Origin: Anaeramoeba ignava BMAN
Taxonomy: Eukaryota; Protista; Anaeramoebae
DNA: 64,000 nucleotides
NCBI GenBank assembly: GCA_028826165.1
Contig: JAPDFW010000103.1
Location: 969,943 to 1,033,942 of the forward strand
Direction: 5' to 3'
Position numbers and translations under genes: made by a program. Below the pieces are notes generated by a model. That model did not search any database and was not told the origin of the DNA. It was given only the letters and a program-made list of their open reading frames with translations. Numbering within the stretch: the first letter of the stretch is position 1; each line of letters opens with the position of its first letter. Of this stretch, positions 165 through 42,730 are shown piece after piece.

Positions 165-1910
165 ATGAATGAAATTATATTTTTTGGTCAAAATAATAAC
201 CCAAAACTTTTCGAAAATGAAACAGATAAAATAACAAAACCAATTCAATTTAAATTTGAAAATGAAAATGAAAATGAAAAACAAATTAAACAAATTTCAT
301 CATCAACTTTTTCAACAATTTTCCTTTTTGAAAATGGAAAAGCAATAGAATATTTAAATGAAAATTATTCAAAGCAAAATCTTCAAAAAATCCAAATTGA
401 AAAAAATATTCAAAAAATAACTGTTGGTTGGCAAAATGAAGCTATTTTAACAATAGAAGGAAATGTATTTGCCAAAGGGTTAAATATTGATTCAGAAAAC
501 CCAAATAAATTTATCAATATTTCATCATTAATTGAAGATACAAATGATAGAATAATTGAAGATATTGTTTCTGGAGCTCAATCAATTTACTTATTAACTT
601 CAAATCAAAATGTTTATGGAATTGGTGATAATTTTAATCATCAACTTGGAGTTGATTCTGAAACACTTGATAAAACAAAAAAACCAATTTTAATGATGAA
701 AAATGTTTCTAAAATATTTTCAGGAAATATATCTTATCATGTTTTTCTTTTAAATTCAAATCAAGAATTATTTGTATGCGGATTCAATCAATGGGGCCAA
801 CTTGGATTAGGAGAATCAAGAAAAGAAGAATCAAAAATCTATAAATTAACTCAAATACAAAATATTCCAAAAGGCAAAATAATTGATGTTCAATGTGGAC
901 TTTTTTATTCAATAATTTTGATTGAAAATGAAGAAGCAAAAAGAAAAGTTTATTCATGTGGAAATTATCAATATAATGGACTTGGAAAAAATGAAAATAC
1001 TTATGAATTTACTGAAATCAAATCATCTTTATTTGAAAATGATTATATTCTTAAAATTTTTTGTGGAAATAGACATACTTTTATTTTAACTTCCAATTCA
1101 AAATTAATAGGATTTGGAGCTAATTTTTATGGTCAATTAGGAACTGGAAATACGAAAGATCAAACAATTCCAATTCAAATTGAACTTCCTAAATTAAGAT
1201 TTAATGAAAATATTTCTAATTATCATGTTTCTTGTGGAGATTCCAAATCATTTCTTTATTATTCTCCTTTTCTTTCTCCTTTCTCCAATCTTGAAGAAGA
1301 TTTGATAAAATTATTTAGAAGAAAAGAGTTTTGTGATATTTCATTTAAAACAGAAAATGGAGAAATAATTGAAGCTCATAAATTAATATTGAAATACAGA
1401 TTAAATCAAAATCAAATTGAAAAACTTAAAGAAATTATTTCAAAAAAATCAATAAAAGAATCAAATCAAATATTTGAAATGATTTATTCAAACAGAATTA
1501 TAAATCCAAAATTATATTCCGAAATTAAAGAAATTATAAATTCAAATGAAAAAATTGAAGAAACAATTAAAAGAATTTATTTAAATGAAAATGAAAAAGA
1601 TTTTATTATTGAAAGAAAAGAAAAACAATATAAATTTCCTAAATTAATATTAATAATGAGAAGTGAATTATATCGAGGAATGTTTTTATCTGTAACAAAT
1701 GATACTTCTAATAAAGTTAGAGATTATAGTGAATTAAGTAATAAATCATTTCAAATATTTGAATATTGGATTTATTCAAATCAAATCAAAAAAGGAATTA
1801 AAATTACACAAGAAATCATCAATGAAATTAAAATTGGAATTGATTATTTTCAATTAAATCAAACATATCCAAATTTATTTGATTTATTAATTAACAAATT
1901 TAATAATTAA
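165..1910 (+). CDS. RCC1-repeat beta-propeller + C-terminal BTB/POZ-like domain protein
   Basis: Intronless 581-aa ORF with RCC1 motifs (GFNQWGQLGLG, GANFYGQLGTG, CGNRHTFIL) and BTB-like segments (FCDISF...IEAHKLILKYR; FPKLILIMRSELYRGMF). Confidence 0.9.
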   Translation: MNEIIFFGQNNNPKLFENETDKITKPIQFKFENENENEKQIKQISSSTFSTIFLFENGKAIEYLNENYSKQNLQKIQIEKNIQKITVGWQNEAILTIEGNVFAKGLNIDSENPNKFINISSLIEDTNDRIIEDIVSGAQSIYLLTSNQNVYGIGDNFNHQLGVDSETLDKTKKPILMMKNVSKIFSGNISYHVFLLNSNQELFVCGFNQWGQLGLGESRKEESKIYKLTQIQNIPKGKIIDVQCGLFYSIILIENEEAKRKVYSCGNYQYNGLGKNENTYEFTEIKSSLFENDYILKIFCGNRHTFILTSNSKLIGFGANFYGQLGTGNTKDQTIPIQIELPKLRFNENISNYHVSCGDSKSFLYYSPFLSPFSNLEEDLIKLFRRKEFCDISFKTENGEIIEAHKLILKYRLNQNQIEKLKEIISKKSIKESNQIFEMIYSNRIINPKLYSEIKEIINSNEKIEETIKRIYLNENEKDFIIERKEKQYKFPKLILIMRSELYRGMFLSVTNDTSNKVRDYSELSNKSFQIFEYWIYSNQIKKGIKITQEIINEIKIGIDYFQLNQTYPNLFDLLINKFNN

Positions 1911-2178
1911 AATTAAAATTAAAATTAAAATCAAAATTAAAATTAAAATTAAAATCAAAATTAAAATTAAAATTAAAATTAAATCAAAATTAAAATTAAA
2001 ATTAAAAATTAAAATTAAAATCAAAATTAAAATTAAATCAAACAAATTCAAATTTATTTGATTTATTAATTATGAAATTTAATAATAAAAAAGGAAAAAA
2101 AATAATAAAAAAGGGAAAAAATAAGTTTTTAAACAAAATTGAGAAAATAAATTGTTTTCATTTTTTGTTTTTTCAAAA

Positions 2179-4029
2179 ATGAATGAAGTTTTATTTTTGG
2201 GTGAAAATGAATATCCAAAACTTTTCAAAAATGATCCAAATGAAATAACAAATGCAATTCAATTTAAATTTGAAAATGAAAATGAAAATGAAAATGAAAA
2301 ACAAATTAAACAAATTTCATCAGGAAGTTTTTCAACAATTTTCCTTTTTGAAAATGGAAAAGCAATAGAATATTTAAATCGAGAAGATCCAAATCAAAAT
2401 CCTCATAAAATTCAAATTGAAAATATTCAAAAAGTAACTGTTGGTTGGCAAAATGAAGCTATTTTAACAATAGAAGGAAATGTATTTGCCAAAGGAAAAG
2501 ATATTAATCCAAATAATCCAAAAGAATTTATCAATATTTCATCATTAATTGAAGATACAAATGATAGAACAGTTCAAGATATTGTTTCTGGATACAATTC
2601 AATTTACTTATTAACTTCAAATCAAAATGCTTATGGAATTGGTTCAAATAGATCTGACCAACTTGGTGTTGATTCTAAAATACTTAAAGAAACAGAAAAA
2701 CCAATTTTAATGATGAAAAATGTTTCTAAAGTATTTTCAGGAAATACTTCAAATCGTGTTTTTCTTTTAAATTCAAATCAAGAATTATTTGGATCAGGAT
2801 ATAATCAATGGGGCCAACTTGGATTAGGAAAATCAAGAAAAGAAGCAAAAATCCAAGAACTAACACAAATCCAAAATATTCCAAAAGGCAAAATAATTGA
2901 TATTAAAGGAGGAAATATTCATTCAATAATGCTGATTGAAGAAGAAGATGAAAATGAAAATCCAAAAAGAAAACTTTATTCATGTGGAAGTGCTATATCT
3001 AATGGGCTTGGCAAAAAATTTGGAGAAGATACTTATGAATTTACTGAACTCAAATCACCTTTATTCAGAGATGATAATATTATTGAAATTGATATTGGAT
3101 TTTTGCATACTTTGATTTTAACATATAAGAGAAAATTAATTGGATTTGGTGGCAGTATGAGTGGTCAATTAGGAAATGGAAAAACATCCCCAAATGTATT
3201 CAAACCAATTGAAATTGAACTTCCTGAATTATCATTTGATCGTTTCAATTATCATATTTGTATTGGAGCTAATAAATCATTTCTTTATTATTCTCCTTCT
3301 CTTTCTTTTTCCAATCTTGAAGAAGATTTGAGAAAATTATTTCAAAGAAAAGAGTTTTGTGATATTTCATTTAAAACAAAAAATGGAGAAATAATTGAAG
3401 CTCATAAATTAATATTGAAATATAGATTAAATCAAAATCAAAATCAAATTGAAAAACTTAAAGAAATTATTTCAAAAAAATCAATTAAAGAATCAAATCA
3501 AATATTTGAAATGATTTATTCAAACAAAATCACAAATCCAATATTATATTCTGAAATTAAAGAAATTATAAATTCCAATGAAAAAATTGAAGAAACAATG
3601 AAAAGAATTTATTTAAATGAAAATGAAAAAGATTTTATAATTGAAAGAAAAGAAAAACAATATAAATTCCCTAAATTAATATTAATAATGAGAAGTGAAT
3701 TATATCGAGGAATGTTTTTATCTGTAACAAATGATACTTCTAATAAAGTTACAGATTATAGTGAATTAAGTAATAAATCATTTGAAATATTTGAATATTG
3801 GATTTATTCAAATCAAATTAAAGAAGATATTCAAATTACACAAGAAATCATCAATGAAATTAAAATTGGAATTGATTATTTTCAATTAAATCAAACATAT
3901 CCAAATTTATTTGATTTATTAATTATGGAATTTAATAATCAAAAAAACAAAGCTTTTGAAGAACAATTAAAATCAAGCCCAGAATTATCAATATTATTCG
4001 ATTTATTAATGAAATTGGCATATAATTGA
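2179..4029 (+). CDS. RCC1-repeat + BTB/POZ-like protein, tandem paralogue of 165..1910
   Basis: ATG at 2179 (MNEVLF) aligns with the paralogue start. Same RCC1 motifs and a near-identical BTB half. Confidence 0.9.
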   Translation: MNEVLFLGENEYPKLFKNDPNEITNAIQFKFENENENENEKQIKQISSGSFSTIFLFENGKAIEYLNREDPNQNPHKIQIENIQKVTVGWQNEAILTIEGNVFAKGKDINPNNPKEFINISSLIEDTNDRTVQDIVSGYNSIYLLTSNQNAYGIGSNRSDQLGVDSKILKETEKPILMMKNVSKVFSGNTSNRVFLLNSNQELFGSGYNQWGQLGLGKSRKEAKIQELTQIQNIPKGKIIDIKGGNIHSIMLIEEEDENENPKRKLYSCGSAISNGLGKKFGEDTYEFTELKSPLFRDDNIIEIDIGFLHTLILTYKRKLIGFGGSMSGQLGNGKTSPNVFKPIEIELPELSFDRFNYHICIGANKSFLYYSPSLSFSNLEEDLRKLFQRKEFCDISFKTKNGEIIEAHKLILKYRLNQNQNQIEKLKEIISKKSIKESNQIFEMIYSNKITNPILYSEIKEIINSNEKIEETMKRIYLNENEKDFIIERKEKQYKFPKLILIMRSELYRGMFLSVTNDTSNKVTDYSELSNKSFEIFEYWIYSNQIKEDIQITQEIINEIKIGIDYFQLNQTYPNLFDLLIMEFNNQKNKAFEEQLKSSPELSILFDLLMKLAYN

Positions 4030-9904: not shown

Positions 9905-11680
9905 TATTTCAAAATTTAAATAAATAATACTAAATAATTTACTTGAAAATTGATTTTATTTTAAATTTAAATAATATTATTTATTATATTAATATTTTTA
10001 ATTATTTATTAATTCAATTTTAATTATAATAAATATTTAAAAAGTGGAATAAATATTTTAATAAAAATAAATAATTAATTTTAATAATAATTAATAATAA
10101 TTTAATTTAAATTTATTTTTATTTTTAATTTGAAATAATAATATTATTTATTATATTAATATTTTTAATTATTTATTAATTTAATTTTAATTATAATAAA
10201 AATATTTGAAAAAGTGGAATAAATAATTTAATAAAGATAAATAATTAATTTTAATAATAATTAATAATAATTTAATTTAAAATTATTTTATTTTAAATTG
10301 AAATAATAATATTATTTATTATATTAATATTTTTAATTATTTATTAATTTAATTTTAATTATAATAAAATATTTGAAAAAGTGGAATAAATATTTTAATA
10401 AAAATAAATAATTAATTTTAATAATAATTAATAATAATTTAATTTAAAATTAATTTTATTTTAAATTTAAATAATAATATTATTTATTATATTAATATTT
10501 TTAATTATTTATTAATTTAATTTTAATTATAATAAAATATTTGAAAAAGTGGAATAAATAATTTAATAAAGATAAATAATTAATTTTAATAATAATTAAT
10601 AATAATTTAATTTAAATTGATTTTTATTTTAAATTTAAATAATAATATTATTTATTATATTAATATTTTTAATTATTTATTAATTTAATTTTTAATTATA
10701 ATAAAATATTTGAAAAAGTGGAATAAATATTTTAATAAAAAATAAATAATTAATTTTAATAATAATTAATAATAATTTAATTTAGATTTGTTTTGTTTTT
10801 ATGTTTTAATGAAAGAATTTAAATTTAATTATTATTAATTTCTATTTTCAATTTTAATTATAATAAAATTTGAAAAAGTGGAATAAATATTTTAATAAAT
10901 ATAAATAATTAATTTTAATAATAATTAATAATAATTTAATTCAGATTTATTTTATTTAAAATTTAAAATAATAATATTATTTATTATATTAATATTTTTA
11001 ATTATTTATTAATTTAATTTTAATTATAATAAAATATTTGAAAAAATTATGAATAAATAATTTAATAAATATAAATAATTAATTTTAATAATAATTAATA
11101 ATAATTTAATTTAGATTTATTTTATTTTCATGTTTTAATGAAAGAATTCAAATTTAATTATTATTAATTTCTATATTTTCAATTTTAATTATAAAAAATA
11201 TTTGAAAAAAGTGGAATAAATATTTTAATAAAAAGATAAATAATTAATTTTTAATAATAATTAATAATAATTTAATTTAAAATTAATTTTATTTTAATTT
11301 AAATAATAATATTATTTATTATATTAATATTTTTAATTATTTATTAATTTAATTTTAATTATAATAAAATATTTGAAAAAGTGGAATAAATATTTTAATA
11401 AAAATAAATAATTAATTTTAATAATAATTAATAATAATTTAATTTAGATTTGTTTTATTTTTAAATTTAAATAATAATATTATTTATTATATTAATATTT
11501 TTAATTATTTATTAATTTAATTTTAATTATAATAAAATATTTGAAAAAGTGGAATAAATAATTTAATAAATATAAATAATTAATTTTAATAATAATTAAT
11601 AATAATTTAATTTAGATTTGTTTTATTTTAATGTTTTAATGAAAGAATTTAAATTTAATTATTATTAATTTCTATTTCCA
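9905..11680. repeat. ~168-bp tandem repeat (about 10 units, AAAAGTGGAATAAA marker) 3' of BTB-TLDc copy 1
   Basis: The GTGGAATAA marker recurs at ~10044, 10214, 10381, 10549, 10718, 10878, 11211, 11381 and 11549. The core is shared with the 178-bp intron unit. Confidence 0.85.
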
Positions 11681-11863: not shown

Positions 11864-14800
11864 TTAAATGAAATAAGTCTCAAGTTCATCAACAATCCAT
11901 GATTTATAAGAACCAGCTAAATAACTTTGAGCTTCATCTGTTCCTTTTTTAATTCCATTAGGTAGATTATAACTAGTACCAAAATCTGATTGACCAGGTT
12001 GTAAATTAGAAGATAAGAAAAAATCATAATCTGTTTTAATAAAGATAAATAATTAATTTTAATAATAATTAATAATAATTTAATTTAAAATTAATTTTAT
12101 TTTAAATTTAAATAATAATATTATTTATTATATTAATATTTTAGATTATTTATTAATTTAATTTTAATTATAATAATAATAAATATTTATTAAATATAAA
12201 TTATTTACGATCTATTTTAATAAATATAAATAATTAATTTTTAATAATAATTAATAATAATTTATTTTAAAATTAATTTTATTTTTAAATTTAAATAATA
12301 ATATTATTTATTATATTAATATTTTTAGATTATTTATTAATTTAATTTTAATTATAATAATAAATATTTATTAAATATAAATTGACACGATCTATTTTAA
12401 TAAATATAAATAATTAATTTTAATAATAATTAATAATAATTTAATTTAAAATTTATTTTATTTTAAATTGAAATAATAATATTATTTATTATATTAATAT
12501 TTTAGATTATTTATTAATTTAATTTTAATTATAATAATATTTATTTATTAAATATAAATTATTTACTAGCTATTTTAATAAATATAAATAATTAATTTTA
12601 ATAACAATTAATAATAATTAAATTAAAATTATTTTTATTTTAAATTTAAATAATAATATTATTTATTATATTAATATTTTGGATTAATTATTAATTTAAT
12701 TTTAATTATAATAATAAATATTTATTAAATATAAATTATTTACCATCTATTTTAATAAATATAAATAATTAATTTTAATAATAATTAATAATAATTTAAT
12801 TTAAAAATTTATTTTATTTTAAATTTAAATAATAATATTATTTAATATATTAATATTTTTAGATTATTTATTAATTTAATTTTAATTATAATAATAAATA
12901 TTTATTAAATATAAATTATTTACGTGCTATTTTAATAAATATAAATAATTAATTTTAATAATAATTAATAATAATTTAATTTAAAATTTATTTTATTTTA
13001 AATTTAAATAATAATATTATTTATTATATTAATATTTTAGATTATTTATTAATTTAATTTTAATTATAATAATATTTATTTATTAAATATAAATTATTTA
13101 CCAACTATTTTTAATAAATATAAATAATTAATTTTAATAATAATTAATAATAATTTAATTTAAAATTAATTTTATTTTTAAATTGAAATAATAATATTAT
13201 TTAATATATATTAATATTTTAATTATTTATTAATTTAATTTTAATTATAATAATAATAAATATTTATTAAATATAAATTATTTACTCCCTATTTTAATAA
13301 ATATAAATAATTAATTTTAATAATAATTAATAATAATTTAATTTAAAATTAATTTTATTTTAAATTTAAATAATAATATTATTTATTATATTAATATTTT
13401 AGATTATTTATTAATTTAATTTTAATTATAATAATAATAAATATTTATTAAATATAAATTATTTGTGATCTATTTTAATAAATATAAATAATTAATTTTA
13501 ATAATAATTAATAATAATTTAATTTAAAATTTATTTTATTTTTAAATTGAAATAATAATATTATTTATTATATTAATATTTTGGATTATTTATTAATTTA
13601 ATTTTAATTATAATAATAAATATTTATTAAAATATAAATTATTTTATTTATTTTTAATAAATATAAATAATTAATTTTAATAATAATTAATAATAATTTT
13701 AATTTAAAATTTAATTTTATTTTAAATTGAAATAATAATATTATTTATTATATTAATATTTTGGATTATTTTATTAATTTAATTTTAATTATAATAATAT
13801 TTATTTATTAAATATAAATTATTTACTAAACTATTTTAATAAATATAAATAATTAATTTTAATAATAATAATAATAATTTAATTTTAAATTTAATTTTTA
13901 TTTTAAATTGAAAAATAATAATATTATTTATTATATTAATATTTTTGGATTATTTATTAATTTAATTTTAATTATAATAATAATTATTTATTAAAATATA
14001 AATTATTTACTAGCTATTTTAATAAATATAAATAATTAATTTTAATAATAATTAATAATAATTTAATTTAAAATTATTTTTATTTTAAATTTAAATAATA
14101 ATATTATTTATTATATTAATATTTTAGATTATTTATTAATTTAATTTTAATTATAATAAATATTTATTAAAATATAAATTATTTACCATCTATTTTCTTA
14201 AAATATAAATAATTTATTTTTTAATAATAATTAATAATAATTTAATTTAAAATTAATTTTATTTTAAAATTGAAATAATAATATTATTTATTATATTGAT
14301 ATTTTTGGATTATTTATTAATTTAATTTTTAATTATAATAATAAATATTTTATTAAATATAAATTATTTTAACTATTTTAATAAAGAATAAATAAATTAA
14401 TTTTAATAATAATTAATAATAATTTTAATTTAAAATTAATTTTTATTTTAAATTTAAAATAATAATATTATTTATTATATTATATTTTTTGTATTATTTA
14501 TTAATTTAATTTTAATTATAATAATAAATATTTATTAAATATAAATTATTTACAAGCTATTTTTAATAAAGATAAATAATTAATTTTAATAATAATTAAT
14601 AATAATTTAATTTAAAATTAATTTTATTTTTAAATTGAAATAATAATATTATTTATTATATTAATATTTTAGATTATTTATTAATTTAATTTTAATTATA
14701 ATAATAATAAATATTTATTAAATATAAATTATTTACCAACTATTTTAATAAATATAAATAATTAATTTTAATAATAATTAATAATAATTTAATTTAAAAT

Positions 14801-17800
14801 TTATTTTATTTTAAATTTAAATAATAATATTATTTATTATATTAATATTTTAGATTATTTATTAATTTAATTTTTAATTATAATAATAAATATTTATTAA
14901 ATATAAATTATTTACCAAGCTATTTTAATAAATATAAATAATTAATTTTAATAATAATTAATAATAATTTAATTTAAAATTAAATTTTATTTTAATTTAA
15001 ATAATAATATTATTTATTATATTAATATTTTAGATTATTTATTAATTTAATTTTAATTATAATAATAAATATTTATTAAATATAAATTATTTACATTCTA
15101 TTTTTAATAAATATAAATAATTAATTTTAATAATAATTAATAATAATTTAATTTAAAATTTATTTTATTTTAAATTGAAATAATAATATTATTTATTATA
15201 TTAATATTTTAGATTATTTATTAATTTAATTTTAATTATAATAATAATAAATATTTATTAAATATAAATTATTTTACCATCTATTTTAATAAATATAAAT
15301 AATTAATTTTAATAATAATTAATAATAATTTAATTTAAAATTAATTTTTATTTTAAATTTAAATAATAATATTATTGATTATATTAATATTTTTGTATTA
15401 TTTATTAATTTAATTTTAATTATAATAATAAATATTTATTAAATATAAATTATTTTACGATCTATTTTAATAAATATAAATAATTAATTTTAATAATAAT
15501 TAATAATAATTTAATTTAAAATTAATTTTATTTTTAAATTGAAATAATAATATTATTTATTATATTAATATTTTGGATTATTTATTAATTTAATTTTAAT
15601 TATAATAATAAATATTTATTAAATATAAATTATTTACAATCTATTTTAATAAAGATAAATAATTAATTTTAATAATAATAATAATTTAATTTTAAAATTA
15701 ATTTTATTTTAAATTTAAATAATAATATTATTTAATATATTAATATTTTGGATTATTTATTAATTTAATTTTAATTAAAATAATAAATATTTATTAAATA
15801 TAAATTATTTACCAACTGTTTTAATAAAAATAAATAATTAATTTTAATAATAATTAATTTAATTTAAAATTAATTTTATTTTAAATTTAAATAATAATAT
15901 TATTTATTATATTAATATTTTTGGATTATTTATTAATTTAATTTTAATTATAATAATAAATATTTATTAAATATAAATTATTTACTCTCTATTTTAATAA
16001 ATATAAATAATTAATTTTAATAATAATTAATAATAATTTAATTTAAAATTAATTTTATTTTAAATTTAAATAATAATATTATTTATTATATTAATATTTT
16101 GGATTATTTATTAATTTAATTTTAATTATAATAATAAATATTTATTAAATATAAAATTATTTACTCCCTATTTTAATAAAGATAAATAATTAATTTTAAT
16201 AATAATTAATAATAATTTAATTTAAAATTAAATTTTTATTTTAAATTTAAATAATAATATTATTGATTATATTAATATTTTGTATTATTTATTAATTTAA
16301 TTTTAATTATAATAATAAATATTTATTAAATATAAATTATTTACTCTCTATTTTAATAAATATAAATAATTAATTTTAATAATAATTAATAATAATTTAA
16401 TTTAAAATTAATTTTATTTTAAATTAAAATAATAATATTATTTATTATATTAATATTTTAGATTATTTATTAATTTAATTTTAATTATAATAATAAATAT
16501 TTATTAAATAAAAATATGATTTATATTTACATCCAAAAATTGGACCATAACTTAAATTATAATAAATTGCATTTCCTTCTTTTCCTTGTTTAATTGTAAA
16601 CTTTTCTGGTTTTCTATCTCCTTTATCATTTCTTAATGAAAAAATAAATGCATTTGAGTCATTAATCCTTCCTTTATTTCCATTAAATCCAACTTGAGTA
16701 AATCCTCCAAAAATAAAATTATCTTTTGTTTTGATAATAACTAATGTTTTTCCTTTTCCATCAACTGCTTTATGCCAATTTTTAGAATTAAATCCATCTC
16801 TTTTTGCTGAAAATCCTTTTTTCATTTTGGAAAAAAAATCATTATTATTTATCCATTCTTGTAATTTCTTAGCATATTCATTTTCTGTAATAATTTCTGA
16901 ATCTGAAAAAATCTTCAACAATTTATTTTGATTTTGATTTTCATTTTCATTTTCATTTTCATTTTGATTTTGATTTTGATTTTGATTTTCATTTTCATTT
17001 TCATTTTCATTTTGATTTTGATTTTGATTTTGATTTTGATTTTCATTTTCATTTTGGATTTGAATTTGATTTTGATTTTCATTTTGATTTGATTCTTCTT
17101 TTTGATTTTCTTTGATTTTTTGTTTCTCTTTTTCAATTTCTTTCTCAAATGATAATTTAAGATTCTGTATTTCTTCATCTTTTTGTTTGAGAATTTTATC
17201 TTTCTTTTCAATTTCAATTTCTTTTTTTTGGTTTTCTTGTTTCAAATTTTGATTTTCAGATTCAAATAATTTGATTTTCTTATCATTTTCTTTAATTTTT
17301 GCTTGAATTTTCTTTTTCCTTATCTTGAAAAAGTTGAGTTTGAAGATCAATTAAAAAAGAATTTGGAAGAAAAATATCAAATTGTTTTAATTTATCAAAA
17401 TCTTGTTTTGAAATTGAATCTTTATCAAATAATGAAAAAAAAGAATGAAATAATCTTTTCTTTGCATTCATTTTGTGTTTATATTTCCTTAATCTTGATG
17501 AATTAACTCTTTTTTCAATCCAATTATCCAAAAATTGAAAAAAATCAAATTGAAAAATTTCTTTTTTTTCTTGTTTAAATTGAATAAATTTGATAATTTC
17601 TTCTTTAGTTAAATTGAATAAATTCTCATTATTCTGAATTTGGGAAAAATTTTGATTTATTAATTCAAAACATTTTATTTCAATTTCATTTGAATTTAAA
17701 TTTCGATTTTGGAATAAAAATTGGAAAAAATTTGAATAATTAATTGAATTTGAAATTTTTTTTTGAATAATTTCTTTCAATAAATTTAATTTAAAATAAA

Positions 17801-18178
17801 TTGAAATTTCTAATAATTGGATAAGATTTTCTTGATTATCAAAAGAAATATTTCCATAATAAATATAACTCAAAATTGATTCCATTTCTTTTTTATTAAA
17901 TTGATTTAAAAAAATCTTATTAATCTGATCTCTATCTCTTAAAAACTCATTAAAAAAAGGAGATCTTGAAGATAAAATTGATTTATGAACTTTAATTTCA
18001 AAAGTATTTGGTTCTTTCTCAACAAAAATTGAAAAATCTTTAAATGAATTTCCATTTAAAAGGTTTGAATAATCTTTAATTAAATTTTTGTTACTTTTTC
18101 TAAATTTTTCATTTCATTTTCATTTTTGATTTTTGGTTTTGCATTTTGAATTTGGTTATTATCATTATTATTATCCAT
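11864..18178 (-). CDS. BTB/POZ - coiled coil - TLDc protein, copy 1, with micro-exon array
   Basis: The large exon 18178-16531 encodes BTB (KVHKSILSSRSPFF) and TLDc (FSAKRDGF, KGKTLVIIKT, IFGGFT, AFIFSL, GPIFG). The terminal exon 12030-11864 reads YDFFLSSNLQPGQSDFGTSYNLPNG...YLAGSYKSWIVDELETYFI*. Frameshifts near 17300 and possibly near 18120 are either errors or decay. Confidence 0.85.
12031..16530 (-). repeat. Array of 24 ~178-bp units, each an intron plus a 3-nt micro-exon (copy 1)
   Basis: The + strand shows TTTAC-nnn-CTATTTT (reverse complement AAAATAG-NNN-GTAAA) about every 178 bp. 19 units have clean 3-nt exons, 2 have 4-nt exons and 3 are degenerate. Confidence 0.9.
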
Positions 18179-19111: not shown

Positions 19112-19560
19112 TTATTTATTATTAAATTTATTAATTAATAAATCAAATAAATTTGGATATGTTTGATTTAATTGAAAATAATCAATTCCAATTTTAATTT
19201 CATTAATGATTTCTTGTTTAATTTGAATATCTTCTTTAATTTGATTTGAATAAATCCAATATTCAAATATTTGAAATGATTTATTACTTAATTCACTATA
19301 ATCTGTAACTTTATTTGATGTATCATTTGTTACAGATAAAAACATTCCTCGATATAATTCACTTCTCATTATTAATATTAATTTTGGAAATTTATATTGT
19401 TTTTCTTTTCTTTCAATAATAAAATCTTTTTCATTTTCATTTAAATAAATTCTTTTCATTGTTTCTTCAATTTTTTCATTTGAATTTATAATTTCTTTAA
19501 TTTCAGAATATAATTTTGGATTTATTTTGGAATTATTTGAATAAATCATTTCAAATATTT
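19112..19560 (-). pseudogene. Orphan 3' fragment of an RCC1-BTB gene
   Basis: Near-identical to the last ~145 aa of the genes at 165 and 2179. It starts in a (CAAAAT)n tract with no upstream RCC1 region. Confidence 0.75.
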
Positions 19561-29083: not shown

Positions 29084-32000
29084 ATGATAAGCAAATTATC
29101 TAAAAGAGAAGAAGCAGTTTTAGAATTAATTGAAACTGAATTTTCTTATGTAAGAAATTTGGAAGTTGTAGTTAATATTTTTTTAGAACCGATTGTAAAA
29201 CAAGGAATTTTATCAAAACCAGATATTGCAATGATTTTTTCAAATATAGAAACAATTTATTGGATTAATAAGTTAATTTGTCAAGAAATTGATGCAAAAA
29301 TTTCTCAAACAGAAAATTATAATATAAATGAAATTAGAATTGGAAAATTGTTTAAATCTTTATCAGGTCAATTTAATATTTATAGACATTATTGTCGTGA
29401 CCATTCTGATGCTAATCAAACTTTTAAGAAGGTTTTGAATCAATCTAATTTTGCAAAATTTCATAAACAAGCTTCTGAAAAAAAAGAATGTTCTAAAAAA
29501 ATTTTACCTGATTTTTTGATTGAACCTGTTCAAAGATTAATGAAATATCCTTTGCTTTTACAAGTAGTTTATTTTAATATTTAATTTCAATATTTATTTT
29601 AATATTTATTTTAATATTTAATTTAATATTTATTTTAATATTTAATTTAATATTTATTTTAATATTTATTTTAATATTTATTTTAATATTTATTTTAATA
29701 TTTATTTTAATATTTAATTTAATATTTAATTTAATATTTAATTTAATATTTATTTTAATATTTAATTTAATATTTAATTTAATTTTTATTTCAATATTTA
29801 ATATAATATTTATTTTAATATTTATTTTTAATATTTATTTTAATATTTAATTTTTAAATATTTATTTTAATATTTAATTTAATATTTATTTTTATTATTT
29901 AATTTAATATTTAATTTAATATTTATTTTAATATTTATTTTTAATATTTATTTTAATATTTATTTTAATATTTATTTTTAATATTTATTTTAATATTTTA
30001 TTTTAATATTTAATTTAATATTTAATTTAATATTTGTTTTAATATTTATTTTTTAATATTTATTTTAATATTTATTTTTAATATTTATTTTTAATATTTT
30101 TTTCAATATTTTTAATTTTTAATATTTAATTTAATATTTTATTTTAATATTTATTTTTAATATTTATTTTAATATTTATTTTTTTAATATTTAATTCAAT
30201 ATTTAATTTTAATATTTATTTTAATATTTATTTTTAATATTTATTTTAATATTTATTTTTTAATATTTATTTTAATATTTTTTTATTTATTTTTAATATT
30301 TTTTTTAATATTTATTTTAATATTTATTTTAATATTATTTTTATTTTTAATATTTAATTTAATATTTAATTTAATATTTATAATATTTATAATATTTAAT
30401 TTAATATTTATTTTTAATATTTATTTTAATATTTAATTTATTATTTCATTTATTATTTATTTTTAATATTTAATTTAATATTTAATTTAATATTAAATTT
30501 AATATTTAATTTAATATTTATTTTAATATTTATTTAAATATTTATTTTAATATTTATTTTTAATATTTATTTTAATATTTATTTTAATATTTATTTTAAT
30601 ATTTATTTTAATATTTAATTTGAATATTTATTTTATTATTTTAATATTTATTTTAATATTTATTTTAATATTTAATTTGAATATTTATTTTATTATTTTT
30701 AATATTTTTTTAATTTTTAATATTTATTTTTTTTAATATTTATTTTAATATTTATTTTTAATATTTTATTTTTAATATTTATTTTAATATTTATTTTAAT
30801 ATTTATTTTAATATTTATTTTAATATTTATTTTTAATATTTATTTTTAATATTTATTTTAATATTTATTTTAAATATTTAATTTAAATATTTAATTTAAA
30901 TATTTATTTTTAATATTTATTTTAATATTTATTTTAATATTTATTTTAATATTTATTTTTAATATTTATTTTGTATTTATTTTAATATTTATTTTAATAT
31001 TTATTTTAATATTTATTTTAATATTTATTTTAATATTTTATTTTAATATTTATTTTTAATATTTATTTAAATATTTATTTTTAATATTTATTTAACATTT
31101 ATTTTTAATATTTATTTTAATATTTATTTTAAATATTTAATTTTTTTAATATTTATTTTAATATTTAATATTTATTTAAATATTTATTTTAATATTTATT
31201 TTTAATATTTATTTTAATATTTATTTTAATATTTATTTTAATATTTATTTTAATATTTATTTTAATATTTATTTTAATATTTATTTTAATATTTATTTTA
31301 ATATTTATTTTAATATTTATTTTTTTAATATTTATTTTAATATTTATTTTAATATTTATTTTTAATATTTATTTTAATATTTATTTTAATATTTATTTTA
31401 ATATTTATTTAATTTTTAATATTTAATTTTAATTTATTTATTTATTTTAATTATTTATTTTTATTATTTATTTTTAATATTTATTTTAATATTTATTTTA
31501 ATATTTAATTTAATATTTATTTTAAATATTTATTTTAATATTTATTTTTAATATTTATTTTAATATTTATTTTAATATTTATTTTAATATTTATTTTAAA
31601 TTTAATTTAATATTTATTTTAATATTTATTTTAATATTTATTTTAATATTTATTTTAAATATTTAATTTTAATATTTATTTTAATATTTATTTTTAATAT
31701 TTATTTTTAATATTTATTTTAATATTTATTTTAATATTTATTTTAATATTTATTTTAATATTTATTTTAATATTTATTTTAATATTATTTATTTTAATAT
31801 TATTTATTTTAATATTTAATTTAATATTTATTTTAATATTTAATTTAATATTTATTTTAATATTTATTTTAATATTTATTTTAATATTTATTTAAATATT
31901 TATTTAAATATTTAATTTAATATTTATTTTAATATTTAATTTAATATTTAATATTTAATTTATTATTTATTTTAATATTTATTTTAATATTTATTTTATT

Positions 32001-33974
32001 ATTTCAATAATTTGAAAATAAAAAGGAAATTATTAAATATACAGACAACGATCATCCTGATTATCAAGATTTACAAGATGCTAAAAAATCAATTCAAGAT
32101 ATTATCGAATTCATTAACGAAGATAAAAGAGAAATGGAAAATCAAGAAAAACTTATTCTTTTACAAAATTCAATCGAAGGACTTCCTTCAAATATAATAT
32201 TAACAAATAATAAAAGAAAATTAATATTAGAAGGAGCAGTTGCTAAAATTTCTCACGGTCGATCACAAGAAAGATACTTCTTTTTATTCGATGATATCCT
32301 AATTTATTCAAAAATACTTTCTTTAAAAAAATCAAAATATCAATATAAAGACTCAATTCCTCTTTCAGTTATATTAATTAATGAAATTCAAGATTCACCA
32401 AAAAGTATAAAATATTATTTATTTATTAATTAATCAACCAATTTTTTTGTTTTAATTCAAATTTATTCAAATTTTAAGAGGATACATCATTTCAATTAAT
32501 TAGAAGTGATAAAAAAACTAAATATATTTTGAATTTCAAATCCAAATATGAAAGAGATCAATGGTTTAAAGAAATTGAAAAATATTCAACTCAAAAAATT
32601 GCAGAAAGTTCTGAAAATTCATTAGTAAAAAGTGTGTAGAAAATATTTTTTTAAAATTCAAATTCTTTTTTGATTTAAATTAAATTTTCAAATTAAATTT
32701 TCAATTTAAGATCCAAGAAGAACACTTGCTAAATCTTTTAGAAATACTTCAATGATTGATCTTCTTTCAACAAACGTTACTCAAAATCAACTTTCTTTTG
32801 ATGAAGTTCAAAAACAACTTTTAGAAAAATTTAATTCACTTCCTAATGAAGTAAATGAATCTAATATTCAAATTGTTGATGATCAAAATTATAAAGGTTT
32901 TGAAAATGAAATGGAAATTATTAAACCAAGAGAAGATGTTATTGAAAAAGCAAATTTACAAACATTAATTAATATTGAGAAACAAATACAATTTAATTCA
33001 AAAAATGTAGGAAATTAAAATTTTAAATTCAATTTAAAACACAAATAATTTTTCCTTTCTTTTCTTTTCTTTTCTTAGAAATTTCAACTTTCTTCAAGTG
33101 AAAGAAAATTTATTGTTGAAGGAGAACTTAAAAAAATTTCAGAATCAGGAAAGAAATCTTCAATTCATCTTTGGTTATTTAATGATGGAATTATTATTGC
33201 TTCCAAAATGAGATTTAAAACAAAATATCAATTCAAAAATTTTATTCCAATTTCTTCAATTACTCAAACAAGAATATTATCAAATACAGAAAGTAAATCA
33301 AATCATTTTATTTTAATTTATTTTAATTTAATTTAATTTAACTTAAATTAATTTATTTTAACTTAGTTCTTCAAAATTCCTTTTCAATTTTACAAAAAAA
33401 TTCCAAGAAAAAATTGATTTTTAGATGTGAAAGTGATGAAGATAAAGTAATGTGGGTTAATTTAATCCGAAAACAAATGAAATTAAATTCGATTGAAAAA
33501 GAAAATCAAGAAAAAGAAAAAGAAGAAAATAATCAAGAAAATAATCAAGAAAATAATCAAGAAAATAGAGAGAATCTTTCAACAATAAGTACTTTTACTG
33601 AAACAAGTGAAAATGATGAAATTGAAATTCCAGAAATTAATCAAGAACAAGAAATTGAAAATGAAAATGAAATTGAAATTGAAAATGAAAATGAAAATGA
33701 AATTGGAATTGAAAATGAAATTGGAATTGAAAATGAAATAATTGATGAAAAACCTCCACCTCTTCCTCCTAAAATTAATACTATGTTTACAAAAGAAATT
33801 TTATTAACTAAAAATCAAAATGAACTTATTCAAATTTTTCTTTCTATTCAAAAAAAATATCAAAATTTTAAACAAAAAAAGATTAATTTAAAAAAATTAT
33901 TTGAAGAAAAACAAAACGAATTTTATATTTTTCTTGATAAATTAACACAAGATATTCATCAAGAATATTATTAA
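29084..33974 (+). CDS. Dbl-homology RhoGEF with two PH domains
   Basis: DH motifs ELIETEFSYVRNL and LIEPVQRLMKYPLLLQ|EIIKYTDNDHPDY, spliced 29563 to 32026. PH motifs RKLILEG...RYFFLFDDILIYS and RKFIVEGELKK...HLWLFNDGIIIA. About 6 exons. Confidence 0.9.
29564..32025 (+). repeat. 2.4-kb intron made of a ~12-bp minisatellite (ATTTATTTTAAT)
   Basis: GT at 29564 and AG at 32024-32025, with a degenerate tandem 12-mer throughout. Confidence 0.9.
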
Positions 33975-38121: not shown

Positions 38122-41100
38122 ATGAATAATAATAATGATAATAACCAAAATCAAAATCAAAATCAAAATCAAAATGAAAATCAAAATCAAAATGAAAATT
38201 TAGAAAAAAAAGTAACAAAAAATTTAATTAAAGATTATTCAAACCTTTTAAATGGAAATTCATTTAAAGATTTTTCAATTTTTGTTGAGAAAGAACCAAA
38301 TACTTTTGAAATTAAAGTTCATAAATCAATTTTATCTTCAAGATCTCCTTTTTTTAATGAGTTTTTAAGAGATAGAGATCAGATTAATAAGATTTTTTTA
38401 AACCAATTTAATAAAAAAGAAATGGAATCAATTTTGAGTTATATTTATTATGGGAATATTTCTTTTGAGAATCAAGAAAACCTTCTTCAATTATTGGAAA
38501 TTTCAATTTATTTTAAATTAAATTTATTGAAAGAATTTATTCAAAAAAAAATTCTAAATTCAATTAATTATTCAAATTTTTTCCAATTTTTATTCCAAAA
38601 TCGAAATTTAAATTCAAATGAAATTGAAATAAAATGTTTTGAATTAATAAATCAAAATTTTTCCCAAATTCAGAATAATGAAAATTTATTCAATTTAACT
38701 AAAGAAGAAATTATCAAATTTATTCAATTTAAACAAGAAAAAAAAGAAATTTTTCAATTTGATTTTTTTCAATTTTTAAATAATTGGATTGAAAAAAGAA
38801 TTAATTCATTAAAATTAAGGAAATATGAACACAAAATGAATGCAAAGAAAAGATTATTTCATTCTTTTTTTTCATTATTTGATAAAGATTCAATTTCAAA
38901 ACAAGATTTTGATAAATTAAAACAATTTGATATTTTTCTTCCAAATTATTTTTTAATTAATTTTGAAAGAACTATTTTTGAAATTCAAGATCAAGAAAAT
39001 CAAACAAAAATCAAAGAAAAAGAAAAGAAAATTAAAAGAAGAGATAAAAGAATCAAATCATTTGAATCTGAAACTCAAAATTTAAAACAAGAAAATCAAA
39101 AGAAAGAAAAAGATATTCAAAATCTAAAATCTGAAAATGAAAAGAAAGATAAAATTCTCAAACAAAAAGATGAAGAAATTCAAAATATTAAATTATCATT
39201 TGAAAAAGAAAATCAAAAAGAAGAATCAAAACAAAATGAAAATAAATTGTTGAAGATTTTTTCAAATTCAGAAATTATTAAAGATAAAGAATATGTTAAG
39301 AAATTACAAGAATGGATAAATGATAATGATTTTTTTTCTAAAATGAAAAAAGGATTTTCAGCAAAAAAAGATGGATTTAATTCTCAAAATTGGCATAAAG
39401 CAGTTGATAATAAAGGAAAAGCATTAGTTATTATCAAAACAAAACAAAATTTCATTTTTGGAGGATTTACTCAAGTTGGATGGACAAATGATAAATCAAA
39501 ATGGAGTGAAGAGCATGGAAATTGGGGATATATTAAAGATGAAAATGCATTTATTTTTTCATTAAGAAATGATAAAGGAGATAGAAAACCAGAAAAGTTT
39601 ACAATTAAACAAGGAAAAGAAGGAAATGCAATTGAATATGATTTAAATGATGGTCCAACTTTTGGATGTAAATATAAATAATTTTTATATTTAATAAATA
39701 AATATTATTATAATTAAAATTAAATTAATAAATAATCTAAAATAATAATTAATAATTAATAATATTTCAATTTAAAATAAAATAAATTTTAAATTAAATT
39801 ATTATTAATTATTATTAAAATTAATTATTTATCTTTATTAAAATAGATTGTAAATAATTTATATTTAATAAATATTTATTATTATAATTAAAATTAAATT
39901 AATAATTAATCCAAAATATTAATATAATAAATAATATTATTATTTTAATTTAAAATAAAATTAATTTTAAATTAAATTATTATTATTTATTATTAAAATT
40001 AAATATTTATATTTATTAAAATAGTTAGTAAATAATTTATAATTAATAAATATTTATTATTATAATTAAAATTAAATTAATAAATAATCTAAAATATTAA
40101 TATAATAAATAATATTATTATTTAAATTAAAATAAAAATAATTTTAAATTAAATTATTATTAATTATTATTAAAATTAATTATTTATATTTATTTAAATA
40201 GTTAGTAAATAATTTATATTTAATAAATATTTATTATTATAATTAAAAATTAAATTAATAAATAATCCAAAATATTAATATAATAAATAATATTATTATT
40301 TCAATTTAAAATAAAATTAATTTTAAAATAAATTATTATTAATTATTATTAAAAATTAATTATTTATATTTATTAAAATAGCTTGTAAATAATTTTATAT
40401 TTAATAAATATTATTATTATAATTAAAATTAAATTAATAAATAATCCAAAATATTAATATAATTATTAATATTATTATTTCAATTTAAAATAAAATTAAT
40501 TTTTAAATAAATTATTATTAATTATTATTAAAATTAAATATTTATCTTTATTAAAATAGGGAGTAAATAATTTATATTTAATAAATATTTATTATTATAA
40601 TTAAAATTAAATTAATAAATAATCCAAAATATTAATATAATAAATAATATTATTATTTTCAATTTAAATAAAATTAATTTTAAATTAAATTATTATTAAT
40701 TATTATTAAAAAATTAATTATTTATCTTTATTAAAATAGGTTGTAAATAATTTATATTTAATAAATATTTATTATTATAATTAAAATTAAATTAATAAAT
40801 AATCCAAAATATTAATTTAATAAATAATATTATTATTTCAATTTAAAATAAAATTAATTTTAAATTAAATTATTATTAATTATTATTAAAATTAATTATT
40901 TATATTTATTAAAATAGATAGTAAATAATTTTTATTTAATAAATATTTATTATTATAATTAAAATTGAATTAATAAATAATTAAAAATATTAATATAATA
41001 AATAATATTATTATTTCAATTTAAAATAAAATTAATTTTAAATTAAATTATTATTAATTATTATTAAAATTAATTATTTATATTTATTAAAATAGATCGT

Positions 41101-41439
41101 AAATAATTTATATTTAATAAATATTTATTATTATAATTAAAATTAAATTAATAAATAATCTAAAATACAAATATAATAAATAATATTATTATTTCAATTT
41201 AAAATAAAATAAATCTAAATTAAATTATTATTAATTATTATTAAAATTAATTATTTATATTTATTAAAATAGTTTATGATTTCAAACTATCTTCTAATTT
41301 ACAATCTGGTCAATCAGATTTTGGTCATAGTTATAATCTACCTAATGGAATTACTTATCAATCAAATGAAGCTCAAAGTTATTTAGCTGGTTCTTATGAT
41401 AAATGGGTTGTTGATGAAGTTGAAACTTATTTCATTTAA
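38122..41439 (+). CDS. BTB/POZ - coiled coil - TLDc protein, copy 2, with micro-exon array
   Basis: The intact exon 38122-39667 ends at GPTFG+T. Eight 3-nt micro-exons follow. The terminal exon 41273-41439 (tt TAT GAT...: YDFKLSSNLQSGQSDFGHSYNLPNG...YLAGSYDKWVVDEVETYFI*) completes the TLDc domain in frame. Confidence 0.92.
39668..41272 (+). repeat. Array of 9 near-identical ~175-bp introns separating eight 3-nt micro-exons (copy 2)
   Basis: AATAG|NNN|GTAAAT at 39847 ATT, 40025 TTA, 40202 TTA, 40382 CTT, 40560 GGA, 40740 GTT, 40918 ATA and 41096 ATC. Confidence 0.93.
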
Positions 41440-41629: not shown

Positions 41630-42730
41630 AATTAATAATAATTAAATTTGAATTCTTTCATTAAAACATGAAAATAAAACAAATATAAATTAAATTATTA
41701 TTAATTATTATTAAAATTAATTATTTATCTTTATTAAATTATTTATTCCACTTTTTTTCAAATATTTTTTATAATTAAAATTAAATTAATAAATAATTAA
41801 AAATATTAATATAATAAATAATATTATTATTTCAATTTAAAATAAAATAAATGTAAACTTTTTAAATTAATTAATTATTATTAAATTAAATTATTTATAT
41901 TTATTAAATTATTTATTCCACTTTTTCAAATATTTTATTATAATTAAAAATTAAATTAAATAATCAAAAATATTAATATAATAAATAATATTATTATTTC
42001 AATTTTAAAAATAAAACAAATTTAAATTAAATTATTATTAATTATTATTAAAATTAATTATTTATATTTATTAAATTATTTATTCCACTTTTTCAAATAT
42101 TTTTATTATAATTAAAATTAAATTAATAAATAATTAAAAATATTAATATAATAAATAATATTATTATTTCAATTTAAAATAAAATAAATCTAAATTAAAT
42201 TATTATTAATTATTATTAAAATAAATTATTTATATTTATTAAAATATTTATTCCACTTTTTCAAATATTTTATTATAATTAAAATTAAATTAATAAATAA
42301 TTAAAAATATTAATATAATAAAAATAATATTATTATTTCAATTTAAAAATAAAAACAAATTTAAATTAAATTATTATTAATTATTATTAAAATTAATTAT
42401 TTATCTTTATTAAATTATTTATTCCACTTTTTCAAATATTTTATTATAATTAAAATTAAATTAAATAATCAAAATATTAATATAATAAATAATATTATTA
42501 TTTCAATTTAAAATAAAGTAAATTTAAATTAAATTATTATTAATTATTATTAAAATTAATTATTTATATTTATTAAAATATTTATTCCACTTTTTTTCAA
42601 ATATTTTTTATAATTAAAATTAAATTAATAAATAATCAAAAATATTAATATAATAAATAATATTATTATTTAAATTTAAAATAAAACAAATTTAAATTAA
42701 ATTATTATTAATTATTATTAAAATAAATAA
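41630..42730. repeat. ~168-bp tandem repeat (about 6 units, TTATTCCACTTTT marker) 3' of BTB-TLDc copy 2
   Basis: TTCCAC recurs at ~41746, 41916, 42083, 42251, 42422 and 42585. It is the reverse complement of the repeat at 9905-11680. Confidence 0.85.

Follow-up and report, generated by a model that had tools for sequence, protein, structure and literature searches.

In Dscam1, one domain-sized exon is picked per cluster via docking/selector pairing. In schistosomes, micro-exon genes (MEGs) contain exons of 3-81 bp, of mixed size and separated by long introns, which together encode the bulk of a secreted protein (PMC4350168; PMC10526429). Each 90-bp exon of the LRR arrays of Tetrahymena encodes a whole 30-amino-acid repeat, with introns in phase 2; these arrays are supported by RNA-seq and have a retrotransposon linked to them (PMC6564038). 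The ROCO-LRR and NB-ARC-TPR genes of Ectocarpus shuffle exons that encode one unit each and are under diversifying selection, and their products are candidate recognition proteins (PMC3341825). Isolated 3-nt micro-exons are described in cytohesin-1, where the micro-exon variant alters lipid binding (PMC6314551), and in RPS24 (PMC12207440).

We analyzed a window of 64,000 nucleotides (contig JAPDFW010000103.1, positions 969,943 to 1,033,942 of the forward strand) from Anaeramoeba ignava BMAN, an anaerobic metamonad whose genome is very AT-rich (bioRxiv 10.1101/2023.03.03.530753). Two BTB-TLDc genes in this window contain rows of 3-nt spacers between cloned introns, and these arrays represent a variant of known exon arrays at the limit of one codon per exon. 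With schistosome MEGs they share rows of very small, tandem, symmetric exons, gene-family expansion, a proposed diversification by alternative splicing, and high dN/dS. They differ from MEGs in that every exon would be 3 nt, the introns are short and cloned, the row is confined to a single loop in a folded domain, and secretion has not been reported. Also, the micro-exons would be a small part of the coding region: the triplets are 24 of ~1,740 coding bases in the gene that we studied in most detail (the window gene).

The Tetrahymena arrays are alike in several respects: exon length is fixed, a single phase is used, junction codons are split, exon and intron units are clonal, copy number varies among paralogs, and unequal crossing-over is proposed. 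The Tetrahymena exon is a structural repeat (90 bp, phase 2), in contrast to the 3-nt, phase-1 unit in a loop of a non-repeat domain in A. ignava. We describe the A. ignava arrays from genomic sequence. The Ectocarpus units are whole LRR or TPR repeats instead of single codons. Dscam1 likewise uses tandem duplicated cassettes within one gene as a source of variants, but in A. ignava the statistics indicate that neighbours are joined. The 3-nt exons in cytohesin-1 and RPS24 are single, while A. ignava has rows of 1-30 in dozens of paralogs.

A first-pass annotation of this window, made from the sequence, knew of no described equivalent. The literature that we could cover, which is incomplete, yielded no paper on rows of single-codon exons or on a TLDc or micro-exon feature of Anaeramoeba, and the main text of the A. 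ignava genome paper does not mention BTB or tandem. The MEGs and the arrays of Tetrahymena and Ectocarpus are partial equivalents.

A row of 3-nt spacers in a BTB-TLDc gene

The window gene encodes a BTB domain (PF00651, 50.7 bits versus a curated Pfam cut-off of 20.5) and a TLDc domain (PF07534, 55.9 bits versus 24.5). At the Gly-rich bend of TLDc, the coding sequence is interrupted by nine GT..AG introns of 174-179 nt (in order: 179, 175, 174, 177, 175, 177, 175, 175, and 174 nt) and eight 3-nt spacers (Table 1). All of the junctions in this array are phase 1. The introns are ~97% AT and are nearly clones of each other, with a pairwise difference of 3.6% of sites, as compared to 58% for the triplets. 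Each triplet has YAG before it and GT after it at constant spacing, as a spliceosomal micro-exon would, and the spacer motif has 20 matches in the window (0.00 expected from 100 shuffles).

The first-pass annotation had described this arrangement of near-identical introns, 3-nt spacers, and phase-1 junctions, and the sequence bore out every one of its coordinates and triplets. Its predicted translations were also reproduced: inclusion of all triplets gives GPTFG-YFITWSYNL-YDF, skipping all of them gives GPTFG-F-YDF, and intron retention terminates at GCKYK-stop. Furthermore, the 256 possible subsets of the eight triplets encode 192 distinct peptides, and none of the subsets contains a stop codon.

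Table 1. Features of the two BTB-TLDc genes in the window and their surroundings. Slashes mark predicted exon boundaries.
Feature	Positions	Strand	Evidence
Exon 1: BTB (aa 42-146), coiled-coil linker, TLDc to GPTFG, plus T of split codon	38122..39667	+	ORF, Pfam, donor
Exon 1 end and donor, GGA T/GT	39667	+	sequence
Intron 1, 179 nt	39668..39846	+	sequence
Candidate 3-nt exon 1, ATT	39847..39849	+	motif
Candidate 3-nt exon 2, TTA	40025..40027	+	motif
Candidate 3-nt exon 3, TTA	40202..40204	+	motif
Candidate 3-nt exon 4, CTT	40382..40384	+	motif
Candidate 3-nt exon 5, GGA	40560..40562	+	motif
Candidate 3-nt exon 6, GTT	40740..40742	+	motif
Candidate 3-nt exon 7, ATA	40918..40920	+	motif
Candidate 3-nt exon 8, ATC	41096..41098	+	motif
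Introns 2-9: cloned GT..AG units, 174-177 nt, ~96% alike, triplets interleaved	39850..41272	+	sequence
Last exon: remaining TLDc (YDF...ETYFI-stop), acceptor AG/TT TAT GAT	41273..41439	+	sequence
Satellite 3' of gene, same repeat family as intron unit	41690..42730	+	internal control
Window paralog exon 1 (BTB-TLDc), frameshift near 17290	16531..18178	-	ORF
Window paralog array, ~25 intron copies, 20 spacers parsed	12031..16530	-	sequence
Window paralog last exon	11864..12030	-	sequence

The second gene in the window (the window paralog, 11864-18178 on the minus strand) has a larger array. At least three further units of this array are without GT or AG, and the first triplet is AGA after a T, so that the first join would form a TAG stop. 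Either this is a decaying copy or there are assembly errors.

Tandem repeats of 165-170 nt, from the same family as the intron unit, lie 3' of both genes (41690-42730 on the plus strand and 9950-11650 on the minus strand); they have no splice sites and their junction is constant. The intron unit may have arisen from this repeat, or the repeat from the intron unit. Elsewhere in the window, ~200 copies of a 12-nt unit, with G and C almost absent (29568-32004), directly follow an ORF that by eye resembles a RhoGEF DH domain, and they probably sit within an intron. Also by eye, the ORFs at 165-4029 and 19112-19549 resemble RCC1-repeat/BTB proteins, which would be another expanded BTB family adjoining the TLDc genes.

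Arrays across the TLDc family and the genome

The genome contains at least 150 related TLDc genes. Of the 31 intron-bearing paralogs that we parsed, 30 have spacers at the junction that they occupy in the window gene (phase 1, directly following GPxFG(G)), with 1 to ~30 spacers per array (many arrays were covered over their first 1.5 kb only). Three other paralogs are intronless at this junction, so spacer number ranges from 0 to ~30 among paralogs. Of the 263 spacers that we parsed, 255 are exactly 3 nt long. Across the genome, the spacer motif occurs 385 times at 3-nt spacing and 25 times at other spacings (9 at 0-2 nt, 14 at 4-5 nt, and 2 at 6 nt). A strict form of it has 274 matches, and the reversed control has 0. 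The arrays are thus genuine and extend across the family.

Four tandem paralogs on another contig (G000 C1:1056418-1073674) have 15-30 triplets each, separated by short diverged introns. Although these introns are mostly 53-163 nt, AG/NNN/GT is still kept unit after unit.

Most of the 4-nt spacers hold a doubled base, and these may be long-read errors. If such errors extended to the arrays themselves, then the whole feature could be an artefact of assembling long reads over an AT-rich repeat; homopolymer-type errors are likely to be present, and the frameshift in the window paralog could be another. But the arrays occur at dozens of loci with a distinct order of triplets at each, recent duplicates share unique diverged introns, and errors do not create codon-phase structure. 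We consider an artefact to be extremely improbable.

All of the homologs among the matches listed are A. ignava proteins. In a metagenome scan, we found one distant TLDc, which is intronless. A public run from 2022 (X1, a set of contigs) contains many diverged relatives of the gene family, including a 527-nt piece with 23 differences; this comparison used exon 1 plus 33 bases of the intron. The match to one 627-nt contig ends at 39666, which is the exon end, and some contigs span the start of the intron, so the run may be DNA. The source of X1 is probably another Anaeramoeba isolate.

AG/NNN/GT motifs also occur in front of introns that are unlike the TLDc unit, at G000 C128:52209-52562, C61:334166 and 393289, and C104:965211 (GAT and then CAT; GCT; ATT). 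Possibly these are 3-nt exons in other genes.

Coding-like features of the triplets

The triplets are 28% GC, as compared to 2.5% for the introns. If they are exons at phase-1 junctions, then the middle base of each triplet would be the third position of a codon. Indeed, this base is T in 84% of triplets and is never C, and the outer bases vary. The composition of the triplets is fit best by phase-1 codon positions (lnL of -853, as compared to -1085 and -1206 for the other phases and -1465 for the intron background). Joining neighbouring triplets yields no stop codons in 215 joins (13.8 expected from shuffling within triplets), and reading them in phase 2 yields 61 stops.

The triplets also change quickly. 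A comparison of recent duplicates shows differences at 12% of sites in matched triplets and at 1.6% in the flanking introns, although this reflects about three independent changes. Among matched units on the contig with the four tandem paralogs, there are two-base changes in triplets (ATG versus GGG) between near-identical introns, which suggests gene conversion or strong selection. Overall, these patterns suggest that the triplets are genuine phase-1 micro-exons that are translated and have been selected for amino-acid change. Taking together all of the readings in which they are translated in some form, we consider translation to be likely, and the feature is probably functional.

Alternatively, the array could be an untranslated satellite: the intron and three flanking bases would have been duplicated, the row would be removed as a single intron, and the triplets would be relics. 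This would fit with the abundance of AT-rich arrays in the genome, with the presence of the unit's repeat family 3' of the genes, with the identity of the common triplets to the first three bases of last exons, and with the open reading frame of the skip form, which is what most public gene models show. However, it does not account for GC-rich, fast-changing triplets within such GC-poor introns, or for the wobble-type constraint on the middle base, or for the avoidance of stops with specific neighbours (described below). The repeat 3' of the window gene is instructive: it is 82% identical to the intron unit, lacks GT and AG, and is invariant at the position of the junction. Furthermore, AG/NNN/GT has survived large deletions within introns; because it is kept in the diverged, shrunken introns of the tandem paralogs, homogenization of a satellite is no explanation. 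We therefore view the satellite as unlikely.

Among the public gene models of array genes, most correspond to the skip form. A few others use the first acceptor and run into a stop, and one retains the intron. No triplet run is spelled out in the public models that we matched to array genes. These models are weak evidence because ordinary annotation cannot place 3-nt exons. A search for short proteins derived from transcripts matched NCBI gene models only.

How the triplets would be joined

Because each codon would be split between neighbouring exons, a triplet that begins with AA or AG would form a stop codon if it were joined to a T. Across the genome, such triplets are found in 2 of 90 pairs in which the upstream neighbour ends in T, and in 23 of 186 pairs in which it does not (p = 0.006, Fisher exact test; p = 0.02 if clonal runs are left out, with a binomial value of 0.022; these p-values are optimistic because the units and the paralogs are related). 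This signal says that genomic neighbours would often be joined. Since it is the genomic neighbour that is constrained, joining in order is favoured over the choice of one triplet.

We had considered a mutually exclusive choice, as in Dscam1, with exactly one triplet per transcript. The idea was first drawn from loop length: in the window gene, one triplet would give a loop of 3 residues, which is the commonest length in TLDc domains. This argument is not general, as the skip form already has 1-2 residues in most paralogs. Stop-prone triplets are not depleted where exon 1 ends in T (6 of 155, as compared to 6 of 100 in the other genes), and single inclusion would create six stops. Nor does this reading predict the neighbour effect. 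The idea lost its support in these stop-codon tests and is highly unlikely. The first-pass annotation had drawn a loose likeness to Dscam, and the avoidance of T-ending neighbours by stop-prone triplets argues against that likeness insofar as it implies mutually exclusive use.

A second possibility is free combinatorial skipping, with an arbitrary ordered subset of triplets in each transcript, giving up to 192 loops for the window gene and far more for the larger arrays. All of the units are symmetric, and the triplet pool is nearly free of stops in any order: just 0.7% of ordered pairs of triplets give a stop, no triplet begins with GA, and the window gene has no stop in any subset. This means that skipping would be tolerated. 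Short subsets would also match the usual loop length of 1-8 amino acids, and schistosome MEGs operate in this way (PMC4350168). On the other hand, stop-prone triplets are placed according to their immediate neighbour, which is relevant only if neighbours are often joined. We regard free skipping as possible, if rather doubtful. It overlaps with the explanation that we prefer (in-order joining with some skipping), because both expect partial skipping.

In-order joining of every triplet has its own difficulties. The first-pass annotation took this part of TLDc to be variable in length, and indeed the loop at this junction is 0-16 amino acids long in TLDc homologs, with a mode of 3. If every triplet were included, then the loops could reach ~30 amino acids and would be longer and poorer in glycine than those of homologs: just 7 of 215 codons in the neighbour joins encode glycine, as compared to ~30% in homolog loops. 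This leaves room for partial inclusion. Also, splicing out up to 30 introns that are only 3 nt apart is demanding, and a splice site is lost in ~9% of units.

The variable loop in the TLDc domain

As a stand-in for the window gene, we used the structure model of a paralog's database protein (P0002), which has a pLDDT of 96. The first-pass annotation had looked to structure prediction to place the loop; in this model it forms a bend that connects two strands. The model resembles solved TLDc domains (TM of 0.63-0.70 in a comparison set of NCOA7, OXR1/2, Skywalker/TBC1D24, and mEAK7; Foldseek E = 7.5e-08 to NCOA7). The array junction lies in the bend that precedes strand 116-118, and this position aligns to the Gly-rich bend of Skywalker (GGGEG). 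NCOA7 has the sequence GGGGGRFG at this bend, which connects two strands, and V-ATPase binding is abolished by a mutation at its start (PMC8608904). The A. ignava proteins match known TLDc proteins in fold and in the position of the Gly-rich bend, but they add a BTB domain and a predicted hypervariable loop.

BTB domains are typical of Cullin-3 adaptors, in which the BTB domain binds Cul3 and a second domain binds the substrate. By analogy, the BTB-TLDc proteins would probably be Cullin-3-type adaptors, with the variable loop as a putative binding surface.

A proposed mechanism

Our preferred explanation, to which we give about an even chance, is that the triplets are translated one-codon exons that are mostly joined in order, and that recombination via the cloned introns shuffles codons in frame. 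Each intron of 50-180 nt would be removed singly (by intron definition), in which case neighbouring triplets would mostly be joined in genomic order, as a whole row or in long runs, with some skipping. Each codon would combine one base from one exon with two from the next. The homology between the cloned introns would promote unequal crossing-over and gene conversion, which would add, delete, or swap single codons in frame, within or between several dozen paralogs, and selection would retain amino-acid changes. The resulting proteins would combine a BTB domain with a TLDc domain whose surface carries a hypervariable loop that is rich in Asp, Tyr, Phe, Asn, and Ser.

The array may have originated by tandem duplication of an intron plus three flanking exon bases. 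This is plausible because the common triplets (ATG, CTG, GTG, ATT, and TTT) are also the triplets with which last exons begin.

The first-pass annotation had instead proposed a splicing-based generator with up to 2^8 subsets of exons and, as its product, variable receptors, a role that is an inference. Its micro-exons appear coding-like, which fits that proposal, but the neighbour signal would fit full or contiguous inclusion, along with shuffling of the DNA, as well or better. A broader proposal, which we offer tentatively as a possibility, is a repertoire generator with codon resolution: dozens of genes would splice runs or subsets of 1-30 one-codon exons, and recombination would rewrite the codon library, yielding a CDR3-like loop on ubiquitin-ligase adaptors.

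Implications

If the triplets are translated, then they would represent exon shuffling at its lower limit, with one codon per exon and up to ~30 exons in a row, and the public protein models of array genes would have the wrong loop. The arrays would also be a natural test of how close together the spliceosome tolerates introns. Furthermore, they would show clearly how tandem duplication multiplies introns, in a genome that contains both young arrays of cloned introns and older arrays whose introns have diverged and become shorter. For A. ignava itself, a metamonad with symbionts, they would be a candidate repertoire for recognition.
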